A DNA stretch of 63,927 nt, filler included, from Hyphochytrium catenoides (Eukaryota > Protista > Hyphochytriomycota), in assembly GCA_900088475.1 (NCBI GenBank). It is 10 parts of 10 records of this genome, joined end to end, with 100 filler letters (N's around TTAATTAATTAA, not from the genome) between each part and the next. Parts side by side here need not be neighbours in the genome. Positions count along the whole stretch, not along the records: positions 12,157 to 43,677 come from FLMG01004158.1; 9 more parts are not named here. One strand, given 5' to 3'. Positions 24,198 through 43,677 of the stretch are shown one piece after another; the stretch's first letter is position 1, and each line of letters begins with the position of its first letter. The notes beneath the pieces were generated by a model that worked only from the letters and a program-made list of their open reading frames with translations, did no database searches and was not told where the DNA came from. The translations under genes were made by a program, and so were the position numbers.

Positions 24198-27144
24198 TTA
24201 TTGCCCAGCCATGGCTGTGCCTAGCGTAGGATCGGAGAGAGGGGAAGTATACACCGCACGAGGATCCGCCGGCAGGAACTGCAAAACAGAAACATTATAG
24301 CAGAAGAGCAGGGACGTCGTGTGCACTCTTAGTAACGCGGGTGATTGAGAGGCAACGGCAAGAGTGAGAAATGGAGCAAGAGAATGAAAGACACGGCAGA
24401 ATCAAAGCCATGTACGCATGTCTCCCTAGACGGTAGATTAGGGGCTCCGTCCACAGAGTTATAGAGAAGTCTACGGGATGGGGGAAGAGATTACGCAAGA
24501 GACTTTCCGCACCTTCTCTATCGCGCGTCCGACATAGGCACGATTTTTAGCCTCTACATTGTCTGGCTGAGTAAAATCTTCCACTTCTACCTCTTCAGGA
24601 GGAGGCGGGGCCGGTGGATAGTACTGAGGGCCAGGGGCGGTGTAGGTTCCATAGTTGTACGCAGCTGGATAGGTCTGAGGATTGACTGTCAGATAGCCGC
24701 TCAGATGGTAGAAAGAAAAAGAAAGAAAGGAGTGAGAGGACGGGTAGGGGAGAGTGAAGCGGAGGCAGGGGAGAGAGGAGGAGGGGCCGGGTAAAAGAAA
24801 GAGAATGAGGGAGGAAAAGGGAGAGAAGGAGAGAGAGAGAGAGCTCAAAAGTGTAGACAAAAAGCGAGAGGGTGACAGACAGTATCTACAAACCCGAACA
24901 AGAGCAGGAAGTCTTAGAAGTGCAAGAGCGAGGCACGCACACGCACGCACATTGGGCACACCGAGAACTCATAGTGGGCAAAACAGAGTCAAGCTATGAG
25001 GGGTAGCAGAGAGTTGGGGAGGGAGAAGAGACCAGGTCGGTCGAAAGAGAGAGAAGGAGCGGAGGAAGAGATTATACGAGCTAGCTACTATGCCAGACTA
25101 CATCAAGCGACCTACCGCGTAGACCGCTGGCTGTTGTTGATAGGCCTCGTACCCGCCATAGTACTGCCCATAATAGCCGTACGCCGCAGGAGCATAAGAC
25201 GGGTATCCATACGCAGCAGCCGCTGTGGCTCCTCCTGCTGCCGCTGCAGCTCCTGTGGCTCCCGGCGCCCGGCCCCATCCAAGCCGGACCTTCGTAGGGC
25301 CAAGCTGCGTGCCATTCAACGTTTGAATGACCGTTAGGGCCTGGTAGTGGTTCGCAAATTGGACAAATGCACATCCTCGGCCGGGTGGGATCTTGACGCT
25401 GAGAACCTCTCCCACTGAGGAGAAGTGTTTCTTCACCTCGTCCTCGGTCACCTGAGCAGAGTCTATACCTCCAACGAAGACAGTGGTGTTGGAGGCGTCT
25501 TCAGATGCGTTCAGCGGAGGAGCGAGAGAGAGAGACTCGGCAGGATTGAACGAGGAGGGTGCGTTTCTACGGGTCGTGGCGGCACTAACCCTCATAGGTC
25601 TGCTGGTGCAATACACTCCATTCATCGTGGCAATGGCCTGGAGGTGACAGCAGACAGGGGAGAGTAAACCATGAGAAAGAGAGTGAGAGAGAGAGAGAGA
25701 GAGCGCGAGAGAGAGAGAGAGAATAGGAGAGAGAAAGAGAGAGAAAGCAGAGATTCAGAAGTATAAGAGAAGTAGCTGCAGAGGCCATATGTACTGCCTC
25801 TAAGGCACTCCGCCCCAAGACCTCTCTACCTGCTCAGATTCCTCTTTCGATGCAAAACGAACAAAGCCAAAGCCCTTTGAGGTCCCTGATACCTGATCCA
25901 TGATGACCTGAAAAGGAGAAGAAGAAGGAGAAGGAGAGAGCTCATTAGTACGCTTCAAAAAAAGGCCCGCTTCAAAAGAAGAGAGACTCCCCATAACGTA
26001 GCTAAGCCCGTGCCCACCAAAGGAAGACTTCTCTCTCTCTCTTTCCGTCTTTTTCTTTTTCTTTCTCTCTTTGTATCTGAGCCCCCTCACCTTAGCGCCC
26101 CTGACAGTGGTGAATCTGGAGGCGAAGGTGGTGTACAGGATCGCGTCCGTGACATCTGAGGACAGATCCCCGACAAAGACGGAGTATTCCTCCTGCTCCA
26201 CCCGCCGCCCACCAGCACCCCAGTTCAGACGGAAACGGAAGTTCGTGCCCGCTGATGGAGAGAGAAGAAGAGAGAGAGAGAGACAGCGGGGATTCAAGGA
26301 GAGAGAAAGGAGCGCGAAGAAGAAGACTGAGTTAAGGACTTCCACAAGCAAGACAGAAGGGTGTTATGTATGGAGAACCGACAGAGTCTGAGGCGAGGAA
26401 CATATTCGGGTTAAGGCGAGCGAGCGAGCGAGAAAGAGAGAGATAGCGGGAGACAAGAGGGGTGACTTAGGGGAGAGAGAGAACCACGTGAAAGGGAAAA
26501 GTAAGAAGAGTAAGGAGAAAGGCGGCAACAAAGGACGAAGCTCAAAGAAACGGTCTCAAGGAGCAGATCCTTCTCCACCCGAAAACAGGTGGGAGGGAAA
26601 GAGAGAGCGAGAGAGAGAGAGAGAGACCAGACAGAGAGAGAGAGAGAGAGAGAGAAAGAGAGGGACAAAGAGAAAGAGAGGCTATTGGCAGTACAGCCAG
26701 CAAGGAACGAAGAGAGAAAGAACCGCCTCATGAGTTCCGCGAAGGGTGGAAGAGAGAGAACGGACACTGCGGAACGCTGCGGCGGTCACGTACGAACGAT
26801 TTGTCCATTCAAAGCATCGAGGACCCGCTGCGCCGCCGCCTTACTGCTGAACTCTAGGAATCCGTAGCCCTGGATGAAGCCCGTCACCTTGTCGCGGATC
26901 AGCTTGATCGTAGGCGTCTCTCCTGAAAAGAGAGAGAAAGTGTGTGCGTGAGAGAGAAAGAGACAAAGAGAGTGAAGGGGGAGAGAGAGAGAGAAAGAGA
27001 GAGAGAGAGGAGAGAAGAAGAGAGAGAAGGAGGGAGGCGCTGACCATAGGGCGAGACCATGGAGCCGATGAAAGCCTCATCCCAGGTGGGCTGCACATCT
27101 CCAATCCAGAGCGTCCGGCACTCCGCCTCACCATAAGCCTCCAT
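24198..27144 (-). CDS. Three-RRM RNA-binding protein, RBP45/RBP47/Nam8/TRNAU1AP family
   Basis: RTLWIGDVQPTWDE, IRDKVTG..GYGFLEF, FRLNWGAG, YSVFVGDLSSDVTD, SKGFGFVRF, NTTVFVGGI, GRGCAFVQF, VRLGWGR; Tyr/Pro-rich tail with DNVEAKNRAY. Confidence 0.92.
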
Positions 27145-27823
27145 CTCTTGGTTAAAGAGGAGAGAGGGCAGAGAGAGAGAGAGAGAGAGAGAAGGAGAGA
27201 AGGAGAGAGAGAGAGAAAGAGAGAAAGAGAGAAAGAGAGAAAGAGAGATTGAGAGAGAGATTGAGAGAGAGATGAAAGAGAGAGAGAGAGAGAGAGAGAG
27301 AAGGGGAGACGCCTTAGAGCAACAGAGGTGATGTCCTGGAGATAGAGAAGGATGATGGCAGTGGGGCCACACTCTGCCTTTACTGAAGTCCGGGGAGAAA
27401 GAAGCTTCAACTGTGGACACTGGGCGGGGAGGAGAGAGGAGAGAGGAGAGAGAGGATGCGACACCGTTCTTGACACCTCAGAGCACCGAAAAAGCAACAA
27501 GCTTCACAGCCAACTTGGGCGGGAACGGGGACCGACAGAGAGAGAGAGAGGGGAAGAGAGAGGGGAAGAGGAGAGGGAGAGGGAGGGAGAGAAAGAGACA
27601 GAGAAAGAGAGAGAGAGGAAGAGAGTATGTAAGGTTGAAGACAGGGTCAGAGGAGGGCCTAGCCGTTAGCCGCTGCCGTGAGTTGTTGTACAGGACATAT
27701 CTCGGCATCCTCTGGCTCTTCATCACAACCCAGAGTACATTGTTCTACGCCTGCATGACGATATGTCTTCCGCTTCTGTCTTGCAGGCCGACATGTACTT
27801 TTTCTCCATTGTCCCTCTCTTCT

Positions 27824-34886: not shown

Positions 34887-36325
34887 ATGGCTTCGAACCT
34901 AGTCTTCTGTGAGCCATGCGTATGTATCCGCAAGTCGGCGGACGGGTCTAAACCAACCATCATCTCCGCTTTCGCCGACGACACACTGATATTCGCTCCA
35001 AACCTCACTTTCACCCAAGTCGAACAACTACTTGCGAATCGCTTCGATGTAAAGGACTTGCGAAAGGTCAACTATTTCCTTGGAGTCGAAGTATTCAGAG
35101 ATCGACAAAACCGCAAGATACATCTTCGAGAATCAATATGTATTGAAGACATACTGAAGGGATTTCGAAAAATGGAGGAAAGCAGCCCAGTCGGCACCCC
35201 AGCTTCGCCAGGTGATTATCCTCCCATGGCGTGTGAACTCCCATCCTTGAGCCCAGCTGGAAATTAGGAGTTTCACAAACTCCTTACCGCAACGCCGTCG
35301 GAAGGTTACTACATCTTATGGCTGTAACTCGACCAGGCATAGCCTACGCAGTGCAGGCAGTGAGTCAACAGATGGGAAACCACCGGAATGTCCACTGGAA
35401 GGTGAAGAGAATCTCTCGGTACTTGAAGGGCACTAGCGCCGCCTACGCACTATGTCTGGGAGGGGGAATGCCGGTCACAACCTCAAGCTTTTTGCTGATG
35501 CCGACTGGGCTAATGACACGTCATTCAGTCGTGAGTCAGTCAATGGGATAATTCATGGCACTTGGGTTCCGGTGCCTTCGCGTGGAAATGCAAAAAGCAA
35601 GACTTCGTGTCATCCTCAACAACTTAAGCTGAGTGCATCTCTCTCTGGACAGGATCCAAATATGCAGCACATATAGTCTTTTCCTTGGCTGAAATCAATT
35701 ACCTACAAGCCGGACCTGTCGAAGCATTCCAAAGTAACTAAAGTACCATTACTGTCTGTCAAATGCCAAGGCCAAATCTAAATACATTGATGTCAAGCAC
35801 TGTGTTGTCAGAGACAAGGTCAACCGCAACGTCCTAAGGATAACCTACTGTCCGTCTAAGAATATGACTGCGGGAGTTCTTACAAAAGCACTACCACTCC
35901 CGCTGTTTCAGGCCTTGTTACCTCAATTTGAGATAGTTACCAGAAATACCACCCATTTAATCCTCCAACTAGAAAGAAAATATCCCAACATCTCTCACCT
36001 AAAGACGTTTGTTTGAAACTGTGGGGAGGTGTTGAACTATGGACTACCTGGATCATACTTTATAGGGTTAAGATGTACCAGCTCAGCCGCCCAAATTCCA
36101 GTCCAAAACTCCAAGTAGAAGCAGAGATATGAAAGAAGAAGAGAAGCTCTAATATCAACTATGGCTTATGCCTATATGAGACCAACCTCTCCCTATTCAG
36201 AATAGGATTAAGTAGGTTCTTGAGCCTATAACCTATAGGGTCCCACAAGCTAGAGAGTACTCTGCTTAGCTTTAAGGCGACATGCTAACTTTAATAAGAT
36301 TGTCTCGAATTCCATACATTCTACA
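34887..36325 (+). mobile_element. Decayed Ty1/Copia 3' part: RT, RNase H, PPT and 3' LTR (36030-36325)
   Basis: EPCV...AFADDTLI (YVDD), DLRKVNYFLGVEV, TRPGIAYAV, FADADWAND, SKYIDVKH, all with stops or frameshifts. Purine tract GGGGAGG is followed by TGTTGAA...TTCTACA. Confidence 0.9.
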
Positions 36326-36379
36326 ATTTCTTCGGAGCAAAGGAGAAGCAGAAGCCAAGTTGGGGGAGCTCATTCTTTT

Positions 36380-38120
36380 CATGAGAACCAGACGGGTGAG
36401 CGCGTGAAGGAGATACGCTCCGATCGCGGGGAGAGTTAGTTAGCAGTGCTGCTGGCAGAGTGTGTTCTCGCCGGGGGATCCTGCACTCTCCTACATCTGC
36501 TTATTCCCTCTAGCAACGGATGCGGTGGACGCTGGATGAGGAATGAGGACTGTCATGCAGGCCACGAGATTCCTGTTGATTGCTACTGACCTGCCTCATT
36601 TTCTATGGGGAGATGCATTGGCCTCCGCAGTTCACGTGTTCAATCGCTGTCCTATTGCCTCACTCACTCGATGGCTCTACCCCTACGAAAAGTGGTACGG
36701 CAAGCCGCCTGATCTTGGTCACCTACGCGTCTTTGGTTCACTTGCGTACGCTTTAAAGCCGTCCACGATGCTGCGAAACCTTGATGCGCGGAGCTCTCGG
36801 TATATCTTTGTAGGTGTGACTCTGCACTACTCATGGGTATCGACTGTATGATCTTGTGACCAAGAGAATCTCTGTGCGGCGTGATGTGGTTATCGACGAG
36901 TCTGGGTCTGGGGCCTTTCTGTTAAAGCAGGCCAAAAGCCCACAACATCATGATTATTATTATGTCTCTTTGTTTCCCATTATAGGGAGCGAAGAAGCAA
37001 CTGCCGTTGAAGCAGGGCAACTAGGTGGTGAAGAGAGTGCAGCGAAACAAGCAGAAACAAAGAAATGCCTTCGTTTGACGCAGCCAGTCCAGAGGAGCCC
37101 ACCAATGACTTTCTGGGGCCGAAGCCAGAGAGCAGCGGTGCTGATGGGACGGAGACGAGCGAGCTTGGCGAAATGAAGATCATCCTGCAGCTTCTTCTCC
37201 CTCCTCTCGGATCACAATCACTTCTCCACTCGGGTGATCGTCGCGGGAGACTGCTACAAGAAGACTCTCTCTCTTTTCCAATAGGCCAGGCTAATCTTCT
37301 GCATGTCTCTGAACCGAACAGTCCGCGAGGCACTCTGTGGACCTCATGCCACAGAACGGCTAGCTGCCATTACGTCAGAGCTCACATCAATGCAGTCCCA
37401 TGAGGTTTAGGATCTAGTGTCTCCACCCCCAGGCGCTCATATTATCGACTCTCGTATTTAGGTCAAGTTGCATAGCGATGGCTCCGTGGACAAGCACAAA
37501 GGCACGTCTGGTCGCTCTTGGCAATCGACAGAAGCAAGGTATTGACTTTTTTAGCGGACTCTTTGCTCCAGTGATAGGGTATGATATTGCTCTTCTTTGC
37601 TCCAGTGATAGGTATGTATGCCTGCTCGTCTACGCACCACGTCGATACTAAGACCACCTTCCTGAACGGCAGCTTAGACGAGCAGGTATACATGCGGCGG
37701 CCACCCGGTTATGCAGCCCGCGGTGGACAAGAGGATCACGTCTGGAAGCTGACGAAGCCAATATATGGTCTCCGCCAGAACCCCAAGATGTGGAATGACA
37801 CGCTGCACCATTACCTTATTGAACAAGAAGGGTTCCAGGCGGCGTCTGTGACTTTGGAGTTTACGTCAATCGGCACTCTTCGAGACTTGCGACCTTGAAG
37901 TCATCGGCGTCTTCTTCGTTGATGACATGCTCCTCTTTGCTCCCACCACCGAGCAAACAGCAGGACAGCAGGTCTCAAGACCATGCTCTCTGCTCGTTTC
38001 TCCATCGCCGATTTGGGGAAGCTAGAGTACTACTTGGGCATTCAAATAAAGCGGGATAGAGCAGCTAGCTAGATTTGCCTTCGACAGTCCAAGTACATAA
38101 CAGAGATCTTGGAGCCTTCA
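36380..38120 (+). mobile_element. Decayed Ty1/Copia pol: integrase, SH3-like region, RT
   Basis: LPHFLWGDALASAVHVFNRCP, PYEKWYGKPPDLGHLRVFGS, RDVVIDE, HKARLVALGNRQKQGIDF, TFLNGSLDEQVYMRRPPGY, YGLRQNPKMWN, FVDDML. IN precedes RT, the Copia order. Confidence 0.93.
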
Positions 38121-38621
38121 ACCCACTTGATGCATATTCCAACCCTATCCCGGCGCTCCCAAAGACGTACCCGCCTAGAGCTTCTACTTTTCCTCCCTTT
38201 GACGCTTAGGCTTGTTGAGACTTGAGCATCTCCCAAAAGCAACAACAATCCGACAAGTGATAAAAAGGATCTGTAAGTCAAGACCGGCAACGCCTAGGAG
38301 GCGCAAACGGCTTCAGCTACAGTCCTTTTTTTAATGGGTGAATTAAAGCTGATTAAAAGTTGGATAAAAGTACACAAAAGGTAGGGACGTCATCACGGCG
38401 AAGTTTAGGTAGATAAAAGCATTACGACAAGCGTAGGAGTTACGGCAGGAAACACGCAAGTAGGAACAGAATATTAGAATGAAGGTCAGGTCCTTGAGAG
38501 GATTGGACGTAGAAGCTCTTCAGTTGAACTGTGATTGACGCTGAAACCAAAAAGTGTACAGCGGACGACGCAGAGGGGAAGAACTCCTGGTATATAAACA
38601 AAAAACGGAGATTAGTCAAGA

Positions 38622-38702
38622 GTACGTTTGGTGTATGGTGCATACTGGTTAGGGTGTCGGCATCAAAGACAGAGGTCCTGGGTTCGAATCCCGGAGCGTA
38701 CA
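38622..38702 (+). ncRNA. tRNA-like RNA (tRNA-Pro(AGG)-like) in 5' LTR
   Basis: Acceptor GTACGTT/AGCGTAC + A73; A-box-like TGGTGTATGG; TTAGGGT loop; AGGTC; T arm CTGGG-TTCGAAT-CCCGG. Upstream TATATAAA (38591) and TTTT at 38707. Anticodon arm non-canonical. Confidence 0.8.
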
Positions 38703-38778
38703 AAACTTTTCTCCGGTATATCCAGACACCCCCTCCCATATTAATTAAGTGCTCACCATCCAATGATAAAATTTAACA

Positions 38779-38792
38779 TGGTGTACGCTCCG
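38779..38792 (+). promoter_or_regulatory. Primer-binding site TGGTGTACGCTCCG
   Basis: Directly abuts the LTR end CA. It is the reverse complement of CGGAGCGTACA (3' end of the LTR-borne tRNA-like RNA) plus CCA. Confidence 0.9.
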
Positions 38793-39007
38793 AGCGATAT
38801 AACTCGGGCAATATAGTGAGCCATTTGGTTCTGTGACCACGGATACGATGACCATCACAGTTCCATTTGAATCTAGAGCTTACAGAGGTCTCTAGATCCC
38901 GGGAGAGTGTTGACCTGTGATCGACGCTGAAACCAAAAAGTGTACAGCGGACGACGCAGAGGGGAAGAACCCCTGGTATATAAACAAAAAACGGAGATTA
39001 GTCAAGA

Positions 39008-39091
39008 GTACGTTTGGTGTATGGTGCATACTGGTTAGGGTGTCGTCGGCATCAAAGACAGAGGTCCTGGGTTCGAATCCCGGAGCGTACA
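39008..39091 (+). ncRNA. tRNA-like RNA, copy in 3' LTR
   Basis: Identical to 38622-38702 except for a GTC duplication 3' of the anticodon-like loop. Confidence 0.8.
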
Positions 39092-39180
39092 AAACTTTTC
39101 TCCGGTATATCCAGACACCCCCCCCATATTAATTTAAGTGCTCACCATCCAATGATAAAATTCAACACTTCAGTAGCTCA

Positions 39181-39478
39181 TGTTGAATGTATGGTATTCG
39201 GAGACAATTATATTATGGGTTCCTCCTCGGCTTATAGCCAGAAAGGGTAGTCTCTAGATTGTGGGGCCCTATTGGATTTGGAATCCTGAATACTACTGAG
39301 ATATATTCCTAATAGAGAGAGCCTGTTCTCTCCTGGTAATATGCCATACTTAACACCAGACTCCACTTCTTCCATCATATCTCTGCTTCTACTTGAAGTT
39401 TGGGACTTTAACTTGGACAAGTTGGTCTGGTACATCTTAGTCCTATAAAGTAAGGCTCACATAGTCCATGCTTCAACA
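39181..39478 (-). mobile_element. Isolated LTR, same family as 36030-36325, inverted
   Basis: TGTTGAA...TTCAACA termini. Its reverse complement shares the blocks AGTAGAAGCAGAGATATGA, TAAGATGTACCAG and CCATACATTC with the 36030 LTR. Confidence 0.85.
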
Positions 39479-39825: not shown

Positions 39826-40747
39826 GCTGACGACCGGCTGGCTCGCACTCCTAATCGCCAAGCAGTTGGTCTTTGCTCTATGTCATGGTGTGCACGCGGC
39901 TTATTATCGCTTATGCAGTGCAAGCTGCGAGCCAAATTGTAACCGCCTTCCGCCATGTCCATTAGGAGGCTCTCGGACGTATCTTCACCTACCTGAAGGT
40001 AAGGCCACCCAAGGCTACTCCTTGTGTCTAGGAGGAGATGCTTTTATTCAACACTCGGTGCAGGCTGATGATGCTGATTCGGCTAGTGACCCAGTTGACC
40101 GAAAGTCTATCACAGGCTATTTATTTATTGAGCCTCAACGGCGGTGCTTTTGCGTGGAAGTCAAAGGAACAATCTCTCCGAGCGTCGTCAACGACGGAAG
40201 CGGAGTGCGTCTCTTTTTGGTCCGCAAGCCAGGTCGCAGAGCAATTCATCGTATTTCTGAGCGAGCTTGACTTCTCTAACCAGCTGCCCATTCCTATAAG
40301 CCAGGACAACAGGAGCGCGATTAATTAATTGTTCTCTGCTCCTCGTCGTCACGACCAAGTCAAAGGCACTCCAAGCACTGTGTCCTGCAAGAGAGGTCAG
40401 GTCGACAATGGGAGAATTAGTCTGGTCCATACTTCCTCCTCCGTAGCCCTGGTACCCGATTGCCTCACCAAGCCTTTACCCGCTAAAGTCTTTCAAACAC
40501 TGCGTCCTCACCTTGGAGTCCTCCTCCTAGTACCAGTACTGATACAGTACTCTTGGTACTACCCACCTACGGTTATCTGGGGAAAGAGAGTGAGTGAGAC
40601 AACAATTTGGTGAGTTAATTTGACCATCACCTGGTGATCCAGGGAAGCTAGGTATGATGGGGAGTCGAGTGCTACAATGCTCGTTGCCAGTAGTACAGTA
40701 GTCATTCTCTATGCACACTTAGTTCTCAGAGACATAGACGTTACAAG
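39826..40747 (+). mobile_element. Decayed Copia RT end/RNase H, 3' UTR and start of 3' LTR
   Basis: DADSASDPVDRKSITGY, GGAFAWKSKEQ..SSTTEAE, QDNRSAI, DCLTKPLP. Then GGGGAG and GAGTGCTACAATG (LTR start ~40664), cut at 40748 by another LTR. Confidence 0.88.
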
Positions 40748-42663: not shown

Positions 42664-43099
42664 TGTTGAGTGCTACAATGTTCGTTGTCAGTAGTACAGT
42701 AGTCACTCTCTATACACACCTAGCTCTCAGGGACATAGATATTACGGGTAGACCTGTGTTATGGAAAAGAGGGATGTGAGAAGAATTTCCAGAAGAACAC
42801 AGGAGCAGCACAATCTAGATGAAACGATAACAAAGGGACTGGGTATTGATCTATGATTGAGATTTCTCTGAATGATGACTCAGTCCAGAGCTTGGTCTGG
42901 ACTCGAGATCTTTTGCTCGGCCCCAGCTTCCCTCATCATCTCTCCTGTGCTGCTCCTGTGTTCTTCTGGAAATTCTTCTCACATCCCTCTTTCCCATAAC
43001 ACAGGTCTACCCGTAACGTCTATGTCCCTGAGAGCTGCTAGGTGTGTATAGAGAGAGTGACTACTGTACCACTGACAACGAACATTGTAGCACTCAACA
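42664..43099. repeat. Long inverted repeat of LTR sequence (arms 42664-42812 and 42946-43099)
   Basis: TGTTGAGTGCTACAATGTTCG...GAGCAGCACA and its near-perfect reverse complement, with a 133 bp spacer. Confidence 0.92.
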
Positions 43100-43677
43100 T
43101 TCCCCCTCCTACCTAGCTTCTCTGGAACATCAGTGGTGAGGGTCGAAGTAACTCACCTAATTGTCGCTCTCACTCACTCTCTCCCCCTCAGACGAAGCTA
43201 GGTGGGTAGTGGCAAGAGTACTGACACTAGGAGGGAGCACTCCAAGGTGAGGAGTGTCCGAAAGAGAGGAGCAGGTAAAGACTTGGTGAGGCAATCGGCT
43301 ACCATAGCTGTAGAGGGAGTATAGACCAGCTTAATGTTCCCATGGGCGACCTTCTCTTGCAGGACACAGTGCTTGACATCTAAAGTCTTTGACTTTGGTC
43401 GTGAAGAGGAGCAGAGGACAATTGTGCTTTGGTTGTCCTGATTAATAGGGATGGCCAGCTGCTTGGAGAAGCCAAGCTCGCCAAGGAACACACACACTGA
43501 AGTGCTCTGCGACCTGGCTTGCGGACCAAAGAGAGACGCACTCCGCTTCGGTGGTTGACGACGCTCTGAGAGGTTGTTTCTTTGACTTCCATGCAAAAGC
43601 ACCTCCGTTGAGGCTCAAGTTCAGTCGGTGATAGACTTGCGGTCAGCTGGGTCACTAGCCCAATCAGCATCAGCCTG
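43100..43677 (-). mobile_element. Copia RNase H, 3' UTR and PPT; same family as 39826-40747; runs into gap
   Basis: FLGELGF..PINQDNQSTI..SKTLDVKHCVLQEKV..VYTPSTAMVADCLTKSLP. PPT AGGAGGGGGAA abuts the LTR start at 43099. Confidence 0.9.

Follow-up and report, generated by a model that had tools for sequence, protein, structure and literature searches.

The primer of LTR retroelements is generally taken to be a cellular tRNA, the Tf1 group using the 5′ end of its own mRNA instead. Cassandra, a TRIM confined to vascular plants, carries a 5S rRNA-derived Pol III promoter and terminator in its LTRs, is proposed to be transcribed from the module in the 5′ LTR to that in the 3′ LTR, and has the usual iMet primer-binding site (PBS), TGGTATCAGAGC. 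The tRNA counterpart of Cassandra, Helenus or TRIMp3, has already been described as a kind (Kojima 2024; PMC10886601). Helenus elements have a total length of 311-1263 bp, with LTRs of ~110-320 bp and a short non-coding internal part holding a PBS and a polypurine tract (PPT); the LTRs contain tRNA-derived sequence with A and B boxes, after which T4 follows, and the fungal and plant families have a 5-bp target-site duplication (PMC10886601). Kojima (2024) proposed in an origin model that the LTR module possibly came from a SINE insertion, inferred priming by host tRNA, PBS types being shared with copia or gypsy partners, found complementarity between module and PBS in no Helenus family, and left the Pol III transcription of Helenus unvalidated (PMC10886601).

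The window, i.e. the whole stretch of DNA analyzed, comprises 63,927 nucleotides from Hyphochytrium catenoides, and all coordinates given here are those of the window. Within its 31.5-kb piece FLMG01004158.1 (positions 12,157-43,677) lies a non-autonomous TRIM-type LTR retrotransposon that is present in high copy number and has recently been mobile (Table 1). It has short LTRs with a PBS by the 5′ LTR and a PPT by the 3′ LTR, both between the tRNA-like units where a preliminary description had put them, and each LTR carries a box A and a box B within sequence derived from a tRNA. A direct-repeat comparison gave 96.5% identity between the two LTRs, and a Pfam search of all ORFs in the 645-bp element returned no domain match.

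Table 1. Features of the element, in window coordinates
Feature	Position	Strand	Remarks
Whole element	38523-39167	+	645 bp, complete, non-coding, two LTRs
Target-site duplication CTTCA, left copy	38518-38522	+	repeated at right edge
5′ LTR	38523-38778	+	256 bp; termini (T)GTTGAA...TTTAACA
TATA, TATATAAA	38591-38598, 38977-38984	+	first base 31 nt before tRNA-like start
tRNA-like unit, 5′ LTR	38622-38702	+	ARAGORN call, odd 4-nt anticodon
A-box-like motif, TGGTGTATGGTG	38629-38640, 39015-39026	+	
B box, GGTTCGAATCC	38681-38691, 39070-39080	+	perfect
TTTT, putative weak Pol III terminator	38707-38710	+	separated by AAAC (4 nt) from discriminator A
Internal domain	38779-38908	+	130 bp, non-coding
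PBS, TGGTGTACGCTCCG	38779-38792	+	directly abuts 5′ LTR
Internal hairpins	38790-38807 (CCGAG/CTCGG), 38831-38860, 38872-38896	+	
PPT, GGGAGAG	38901-38907	+	short; adjoins 3′ LTR
3′ LTR	38909-39167	+	259 bp; direct repeat of 5′ LTR
tRNA-like unit, 3′ LTR	39008-39091	+	ARAGORN call Pro-AGG; 3-nt insertion relative to 5′ copy
TTTT, 3′ LTR	39096-39099	+	4 nt (AAAC) past tRNA-like unit
Target-site duplication CTTCA, right copy	39168-39172	+	

The element is almost certainly a member of the Helenus type. Its sizes and layout are like those given above, its LTRs have the same succession of A box, B box and T4, and the 5-bp target-site duplication and the copia-type surroundings are likewise as in published families (PMC10886601). 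Helenus-1_AmAr and Helenus-1_SMo resemble it in their LTR termini, TGTTGAA...TTCAACA, and in the T-arm stretch GAGGTCCTGGGTTC. The closest Helenus look-alikes come from Agaricomycetes and Selaginella. When Data S1 of Kojima 2024 was searched with twelve words of 7-14 nt from the element, none indicated the family and nine had no match at all; the matches of the other three, TGGTGTAC, GCGTACA (unrelated families) and GTCCTGGGTTC (Helenus-1_SMo), are chance or the common T-arm stretch. By this word search, the present family appears to be absent from that sequence set. It differs from the families described there in its module, which resembles tRNA-Pro(AGG) but has lost its anticodon arm, and in its PBS type, TGGTGTACGCTCC, which is none of the types given. 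The preliminary description arrived independently at the notion, already published for TRIMp3 and Cassandra (PMC10886601), that a small-RNA Pol III promoter drives an LTR element; as a kind, its claim is not new. What goes beyond Kojima 2024 is the complementarity of the PBS to the element's own module and the T4 pattern in the Helenus consensus sequences of rusts.

Other known systems share single traits with the element. As in Cassandra, a small-RNA-like gene resides in the LTRs and the same scheme of transcription from module to module is proposed, whereas the PBS differs from that of Cassandra; identity with Cassandra was rejected, as the module is tRNA-like and the Rfam 5S_rRNA model gave no match at E <= 1 over the whole piece. 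Tf1 and Tf2 obtain the primer from the element's own transcript and not from a cellular tRNA, which is the same idea as that considered here. In Tf1, though, the first 11 nt of the element's own mRNA fold back and are cut by RNase H, whereas the candidate primer here is a separate CCA-tailed tRNA-like RNA; self-priming of the Tf1 type does not apply, the 5′ end of the putative transcript having no complementarity to the PBS. With tRNA-derived SINEs (SINE2) the module shares a tRNA-derived head and an internal Pol III promoter of A and B boxes. SINEs, however, lack LTRs, PBS and PPT and are moved by LINEs through target-primed reverse transcription, and the module here is part of a direct repeat of 256 bp, the two copies of which enclose a PBS and a PPT, so that assignment to the SINEs was dropped. 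Retrozymes are likewise non-autonomous, with LTRs that hold a functional small-RNA motif and are unrelated to partner LTRs; unlike the present element, they have a self-cleaving hammerhead ribozyme and a circular RNA intermediate and no Pol III gene.

Evidence for mobility comes from sequencing run X1. About 598 of its contigs fall on the element, including 162 that are >=99% identical to it, and the summed contig depth over most of the element is ~60-400 times that of the flanks. One contig of the run represents the empty site, joining 38517 to 39168 and skipping 650 nt, and copies with different flanks turned up in a rhizosphere metagenome and two further organisms. The insertion lies within a degenerate Ty1/copia element and is flanked by the CTTCA duplication. 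The duplication could alternatively be 4-bp CTTC, if the LTR begins with a mutated T at 38522; in a contig from another organism the match begins exactly at 38523, with a T just before. Further copies were found neither in metagenome scans with TTCGAATCCCGGAGCGTACA and GGTGCATACTGGTTAGGGTG, nor in a viral-contig scan and a prokaryote-genome scan, nor with the LTR's spurious ORFs as queries in a large protein search and exact look-ups.

Both tRNA-like units are tRNA-Pro(AGG)-like: the loop is TTAGGGT, the variable region AGGTC and the T arm of the Pro type. Acceptors of eukaryotic tRNA-Pro are typically GGG/GGC...C73, from which the module differs with GTACGTT/AGCGTAC and A73. In the unit of the 5′ LTR this acceptor stem, the D-arm GG and the T arm are intact while the anticodon arm is broken, and in the MFE fold the acceptor stem is retained with 7 bp and the T stem with 5 bp and its TTCGAAT loop, but the anticodon arm does not form. 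With the Rfam tRNA model, a search of 131 nt found no match at a cutoff as loose as E <= 10, and recognition was confined to the T arm; a functional tRNA gene was rejected on this ground together with the 4-nt anticodon of the first copy and the unformed anticodon arm. The TATA motif 31 nt upstream, the A-box-like motif and the perfect B box all lie at the positions named in the preliminary description. The A-box region TGGTGTATGGTG has the TRG...GG elements, with T at the fourth position where C is usual, and TATATAAA could serve Pol III as an upstream TATA element or, fitting equally well, be the TATA box of a Pol II promoter.

Variation in the family is sparse over these motifs. Frequent variants of TATATAAA are absent, with one rare change in the 3′ copy at position 38979. 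TTTT at 38707-38710 has no variant at >=10% in the ~598 contigs, and for the PBS region (38774-38798) no variants are listed in the family, so that the PBS is invariant. The sole frequent variant within the tRNA-like module, G>A at 38686, turns TTCGAAT into TTCAAAT and retains the B box. Polymorphic sites number 1 in 81 positions of the module versus 11 in 175 of the rest of the LTR, a trend only (p = 0.11).

The PBS is the perfect 14-nt reverse complement of CGGAGCGTACA (38692-38702) followed by CCA, which differs from Kojima's Helenus families, in none of which such complementarity is present (PMC10886601). After the discriminator base the genome has AAAC and not CCA, so the first three bases of the PBS pair only once CCA has been added. 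The preliminary description had proposed that termination at the first T4 yields a pre-primer, and this match lends it indirect support. Of 20,000 shuffles, 10 contained an 11-nt PBS match (without CCA) at some place in the LTR, and here the match falls exactly at the predicted 3′ end of the tRNA-like unit; it exceeds chance. No other stretch of the LTR is complementary to the PBS, the 5′ strand of the module having PBS sense. The match ends at 14 nt: at position 15 the PBS has A, the complement of which is T, whereas the module carries C, and the family shows no variant that would correct this. Beyond it the reverse complement of the PBS runs on as CTCGG, a valid 3′ strand of a T stem (C61), where the module has CCCGG.

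Runs of T>=4 occur on the + strand of 38523-39167 only at 38707-38710 and 39096-39099, each 4 nt past a tRNA-like unit, as originally noted, and the ~475 nt given there for the read-through RNA agree with the 478 nt by which the second T4 follows the start of the first tRNA-like unit. A depletion of such runs within this copy was not significant: when the 386-nt unique unit was shuffled by mononucleotides, <=1 TTTT was present in 65% of the shuffles and none in 34%, and the shortage of extra T4 runs in the single copy is at chance level. The proposal that T4 is leaky gained indirect support from elsewhere. T4 is a weak terminator for yeast Pol III, and an adjacent acceptor stem aids termination (PMC9278858). 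In a by-eye count over Data S1 part 1 of Kojima 2024, made on consensus sequences from three Puccinia species that are not independent of one another, exactly T4 and never T5+ followed the module in 25 of 25 Helenus LTRs, U3 lacked T4 in 24 of 25 and had it in one, and the internal regions had T4 in 0 of 23 (~3.2 kb) versus 19 A4+ runs. Throughout the Data S1 file, runs of >=5 were rarer for T (44/244) than for A (90/215; Fisher p = 2e-8). Counter to the T4 rule, some wasp Helenus LTRs carry T6. The exact T4 and the T4-free internal regions of rust Helenus fit a putative Pol III read-through past a weak terminator, and this pattern at the level of the class is the first sequence-based argument for Helenus genomic RNA as a Pol III read-through product.

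In the mechanism that we propose, the module would be a type-2 Pol III gene with an upstream TATA, an A box and a B box. A stop at the TTTT 4 nt past the module would give a ~90-nt pre-tRNA-like RNA, and its intact acceptor/T-arm half would permit processing by RNase P, RNase Z and the CCA-adding enzyme to a module RNA of ~84 nt with the end ...GCGUACACCA, the CCA being non-templated. This 3′ end, ...CGGAGCGUACA-CCA, would anneal over 14 nt to the element's own PBS and prime minus-strand synthesis inside particles from an autonomous partner, probably copia. Because T4 is a weak terminator, a part of Pol III would read through to the TTTT of the 3′ LTR and produce a genomic RNA of ~480 nt, the terminal redundancy (R) of which would be the tRNA-like module. 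We put the chance that the genomic RNA arises by Pol III read-through at about even, while the use of the element's own tRNA-like RNA as primer can be suggested only tentatively. As the best explanation this mechanism has a chance of not quite even, and that all of its steps hold together is rather unlikely. That this Helenus family encodes its own RT primer, with a weak T4 determining how much Pol III product becomes primer and how much genomic RNA, is as a combined statement rather doubtful. If it is true, a small Pol III gene yielding its own primer would be a third priming solution, the element would be the first LTR retroelement known with a dedicated primer gene, and the intact acceptor/T-arm half-tRNA in a non-coding parasite would be explained despite the decaying anticodon arm.

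Against these steps, processing of the primer by RNase P and RNase Z would also deprive the read-through RNA of the module at its two ends: a module that is a good substrate, as the primer needs, would by the same cuts lose R from that RNA, and in MFE folds no protective cis pairing between PBS and acceptor is predicted. Were the module RNA to prime in every cycle, with copying past the 14 nt, corrected PBS variants would be expected, and the family has none. The Helenus class in general does not self-prime by its module, since Kojima (2024) found module-PBS complementarity in no other family.

It is possible, though we think it rather unlikely, that the element is primed by a host tRNA. The module would then serve as no more than a promoter cassette for Pol III (or as an enhancer), and the primer would share the 3′ end of the module by descent, from the tRNA or a derived SINE, or by mimicry. 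Kojima inferred host-tRNA priming for all other Helenus families (PMC10886601), and a host tRNA ending in CTCGGAGCGTACA-CCA would pair over 16 nt versus 14 for the module, given the CTCGG with which the reverse complement of the PBS continues; the mismatch at PBS position 15 is also fixed in the family. Such a primer calls for a host tRNA gene outside Helenus copies with the 3′ end AGCGTACA, but ARAGORN finds no such tRNA in the 31.5-kb piece, the acceptor joined to the Pro(AGG)-like body is unlike those typical of eukaryotic tRNA-Pro, and common ancestry of module and primer is seen in none of Kojima's families. An improbable reading takes the complementarity between R and PBS as a cis leader stem that controls primer access, dimerization or packaging. 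The encoded complementarity of 11 nt joins segments 76 nt apart on one RNA, and PBS-occluding leader stems are common among retroelements. Yet neither the MFE nor the centroid fold of 38618-38810 contains this pairing, the PBS pairing locally instead (ACCAU/AUGGU and CCGAG/CUCGG), and a stem leaves unexplained why the complementarity stops at the discriminator base and resumes as TGG, the complement of CCA. The preliminary description further suggested priming in cis, the tRNA-like 3′ end of the read-through RNA being trimmed, CCA-tailed and folded onto the PBS ~300 nt upstream. Its sole support is the PBS-module complementarity, with Tf1-type elements showing that self-priming is possible in principle, and we consider it very improbable: RNase P would sever the 3′ module from the genomic RNA, no fold supports it, it adds nothing beyond a short RNA acting in trans, and we know of no precedent for cis priming by a trimmed tRNA-like 3′ end.

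Transcription may instead be that of an ordinary Pol II TRIM, which we regard as a minority possibility. Here TATATAAA would be the TATA of U3, with a start at ~38620-38630, and the 3′ LTR would provide the poly(A) site in its AT-rich U5; the module would merely be part of R and the T4 runs irrelevant to the genomic RNA, and Pol III might still transcribe the module separately. A canonical TATA without frequent variants lies 23-31 nt upstream of the module, so placed that a Pol II start falls at the same place, and the AT-rich ATTAATTAAG...AATGATAAAAT downstream in U5 could contain a poly(A) signal. This route also sidesteps the read-through of the element's own terminator, and the T4 scarcity of the present copy does not speak against it. 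Pol III genes of fission yeast and of plants, too, normally have upstream TATA elements. It is the rust Helenus sequences that argue against Pol II: sense T4 is missing from all 23 internal regions and 24 of 25 U3 with A4+ common, and without exception the module is followed by T4 exactly, patterns that are unexpected for Pol II templates.

As to the host, atlas neighbors indicated Streptophyta or Oomycota. An RRM gene is located near the element; its best relative is a Logan contig, at 71% and with introns of 47-57 nt. Elements of this type swell tRNA gene predictions and, being compact, lend themselves to work on the tuning of Pol III terminator strength.

The element at 38523-39167, a miniature LTR retrotransposon (TRIM), is 645 bp long and ends in two direct repeats that are 96.5% identical. 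A 3-nt indel within the tRNA-like unit that each LTR carries (the module) distinguishes the two copies. The TATA box, A-box-like motif, B box, tRNA-like units and TTTT runs named in the preliminary description were all found in place. The internal part (130 bp) is non-coding, and a Pfam search of all ORFs of the element gave no matches. The first of its three hairpins, CCGAG/CTCGG (38790-38807), takes in the last bases of the primer-binding site (PBS) region, and a 5-nt deletion at 38842 is frequent among copies of the element.

Features of the element and of the Ty1/copia remains around it
Feature	Position	Sequence or remark
Target-site duplication (TSD)	38518-38522 and 39168-39172	CTTCA, identical at both flanks
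LTRs	38523-38778 and 38909-39167	direct repeats
TATA box	38591-38598 and 38977-38984	TATATAAA
tRNA-like units	38622-38702 and 39008-39091	called by ARAGORN
A-box-like motif	in tRNA-like unit	TGGTGTATGGTG
B box		GGTTCGAATCC, perfect
TTTT	4 nt 3' of each tRNA-like unit	sole T≥4 runs on + strand within element
PBS	38779-38792	TGGTGTACGCTCCG, adjoins 5' repeat at its 3' side
Hairpins, internal domain	38790-38807, 38831-38860, 38872-38896
Polypurine tract, short	immediately 5' of 3' repeat	GGGAGAG
Degenerate fragments	35300-38100, 39866-40744, 43013-43672	Ty1/copia
Integrase SH3-like fragment	36543-36851	Ty1/copia
RVT_2 fragment	37581-37898	Ty1/copia
RNase H-like motifs	near 40100	Ty1/copia
Inverted pair	40069-40744 / 43672-43013	78% identical

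Logan contigs from four public runs were aligned on 38400-39300. The element is mobile and multi-copy. About 598 contigs of run X1 lay on it, 162 with an identity of at least 99% and 257 at 95-99%, and the summed contig depth over most of the element was ~60-400 times the flank depth. One contig from an empty site connects 38517 straight to 39168, which confirms the element boundaries. Contigs from two further organisms and a rhizosphere metagenome contained the LTR with other flanks at 90-98% identity, and traces of the element occurred in soil, rhizosphere and plant metagenomes. Language-model neighbours fell in clusters of plants or oomycetes; a tentative guess at the host is a eukaryotic microbe of soil or plants, probably fungal. 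Two contigs with differing flanks have a T directly before GTTGA; therefore the LTR termini are probably canonical TG...CA (TGTTGAA...TTCAACA). In the present copy the first T of the LTR was either lost, giving a 5-bp TSD, or changed to A, giving a 4-bp TSD. Almost every other copy differs at six sites (38773, 38799, 38826, 38888, 38904 and 38914), which are private mutations of this rather old copy; none of the six falls in the module or PBS.

The element agrees with Helenus in size, LTR length, TSD and copia context, and its LTR termini and the stretch GAGGTCCTGGGTTC also occur in Helenus-1_AmAr and Helenus-1_SMo. Helenus is found in rust fungi, a few Agaricomycetes, several animal phyla and Selaginella, and forms TRIMp3 together with Cassandra (5S) and Ajax (Kojima 2024, PMC10886601). 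Kojima Data S1 was searched for twelve 7-14-nt words of the element. Nine were absent, TGGTGTAC and GCGTACA matched unrelated families only, and the match of GTCCTGGGTTC was limited to the shared T-arm stretch of Helenus-1_SMo. By this search the element's own family is absent from Data S1, and we classify it from its sequence as a new family of the known kind Helenus/TRIMp3. At the centre of the preliminary description stood the proposal that the element is driven by a Pol III module within its LTR. This is a re-derivation, since the TRIMp3 concept already states it; for Helenus the concept itself is plausible and experimentally unvalidated (Kojima 2024, PMC10886601).

The module is similar to tRNA-Pro(AGG) in the anticodon loop (TTAGGGT), variable region (AGGTC) and T arm (CTGGG-TTCGAAT-CCCGG). 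Its MFE fold retains the T arm and a 7-bp acceptor stem, GTACGTT/AGCGTAC, with one G-U pair. The anticodon arm is destroyed, and ARAGORN gave copy 1 an anticodon of 4 nt. The Rfam tRNA model left the unit unmatched even with a search space of 131 nt and E ≤ 10, the T arm alone being detected. A decoding tRNA was rejected on the loss of the anticodon arm and the lack of a match to this model. Because the acceptor stem and T arm are kept while these other parts are lost, the module is a degenerate tRNA 'top half' carrying the promoter boxes. The sole frequent family variant within the unit, G>A at 38686, turns TTCGAAT into TTCAAAT and preserves the B box.

The PBS matches this same module. Its reverse complement reads ...CTCGGAGCGTACACCA, the module ends in ...CCCGGAGCGTACA, and the genome then reads AAACTTTT. 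With CCA added, the module pairs perfectly with the PBS over 14 nt, from the first base past the LTR to the last base of CCA; the TGG of the PBS pairs solely with the CCA added post-transcriptionally. Among 20000 shuffles, 10 contained an 11-nt match at any place in the LTR, and the real match lies exactly at the predicted 3' end. The complementarity is a real, non-chance feature. It is an exception among Helenus and contradicts the sole published survey (Kojima 2024). In the simplest functional reading, a short RNA made from the module by Pol III would be processed as a pre-tRNA to yield the primer; the half that is kept, acceptor and T arm, is the very part recognised by RNase P, RNase Z and the CCA-adding enzyme. 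The complementarity turns the notion of an LTR element that encodes its own primer into a concrete and testable hypothesis, possible in our judgment but somewhat short of an even chance. The proposal that the 3' module primes in cis has this shared complementarity as its sole support.

Alternatively, the PBS would pair with a host tRNA ending CTCGGAGCGTACA-CCA, which would fit over 16 nt. At position 15 the match to the module breaks off, with T implied by the PBS against C in the module, and this mismatch is fixed across the family. The fixation could be because the hairpin CCGAG/CTCGG uses the end of the PBS region. The acceptor stem is presumably unlike the tRNA-Pro acceptors of other eukaryotes, a point against the module being a simple descendant of host tRNA-Pro. 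No host tRNA genes were found in the 31.5-kb piece.

One leaky TTTT (T4) Pol III terminator had been proposed to yield both the primer and a ~475 nt genomic RNA, with depletion of T4 runs as a check. In this copy depletion did not go beyond shuffle expectation: 65% of shuffles of the 386-nt unit contained at most one TTTT, so the absence of further T4 runs is uninformative and proves nothing. The same check could be applied to the published class. T runs were counted by eye in part 1 of Kojima Data S1 (consensus sequences of 25 LTRs and 23 internal regions, all of three Puccinia species); the families are related, hence not independent, and the counts are raw, not composition-corrected. In all 25 LTRs of this part a T run follows the module at a distance of a few to ~20 nt and is exactly TTTT, never longer. 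A second TTTT lies further along U5 in 2/25, and U3 holds a TTTT in 1/25. The 23 internal regions (~3.2 kb) hold no TTTT versus 19 runs of A4 or longer. Excerpted Agaricomycete, Hemileia, Selaginella and ctenophore entries behaved in the same way, the exception in the excerpts being T6 in two wasp LTRs. Word counts over the whole of Data S1 were 244 tttt and 44 ttttt versus 215 aaaa and 90 aaaaa (Fisher p = 2e-8). The text of Kojima 2024 (PMC10886601) contains no discussion of terminators in Helenus. For yeast Pol III, T4 is a weak terminator, moderately efficient with an RNA helix such as an acceptor stem just upstream (PMC9278858).

In the proposed mechanism Pol III would both stop and read through at the same T4 signal. 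A conserved minimal terminator, with avoidance of sense T runs in the internal region and U3, would be expected in that case, and the T4 after the module in 25/25 LTRs together with T4-free internal regions resembles a signature, shared across the class, of Pol III reading through a deliberately weak terminator. A Pol II template would make the conserved T4 and the avoidance of sense T runs difficult to account for. The TATA box suits a Pol II promoter as well as it suits a Pol III upstream element. The leaky terminator thus gains indirect, class-level support, this copy is like its shuffles, and read-through is unproven. Making two products from one promoter also carries a tension. A good RNase P/Z substrate, as needed for the primer, would have the same cuts strip the module from both ends of the read-through RNA, and the terminal redundancy for strand transfer would thereby be destroyed. 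Unfolding of the 5' module by the PBS in cis, which would protect long transcripts, involves a pairing absent from the MFE folds.

The element sits inside degenerate Ty1/copia debris. Together with a copia pol fragment, the Helenus copy lies between the arms of a 300-bp inverted repeat (36030-36325 / 39181-39478, 72.6% identical); these arms may themselves be LTRs that belong to separate nested elements. A near-perfect long hairpin on the - strand within the copia fragment (37614-37693) scored as mir-552-like (28.6 bits, gathering score 100, E = 0.076); most likely this inverted repeat arose by chance. A MIR408 match at 27434-27705 (20.6 bits versus a gathering score of 64) is spurious and derives from a (GA)n-rich low-complexity tract. 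A gene of several exons on the - strand (25269-27129) encodes an RRM protein (Pfam RRM_1) of the TIA-1/Pub1/RBP45-like kind. Its introns measure ~120-600 nt; in its closest database relative (71% identity, Logan contig L001) the corresponding introns are just 47-57 nt.
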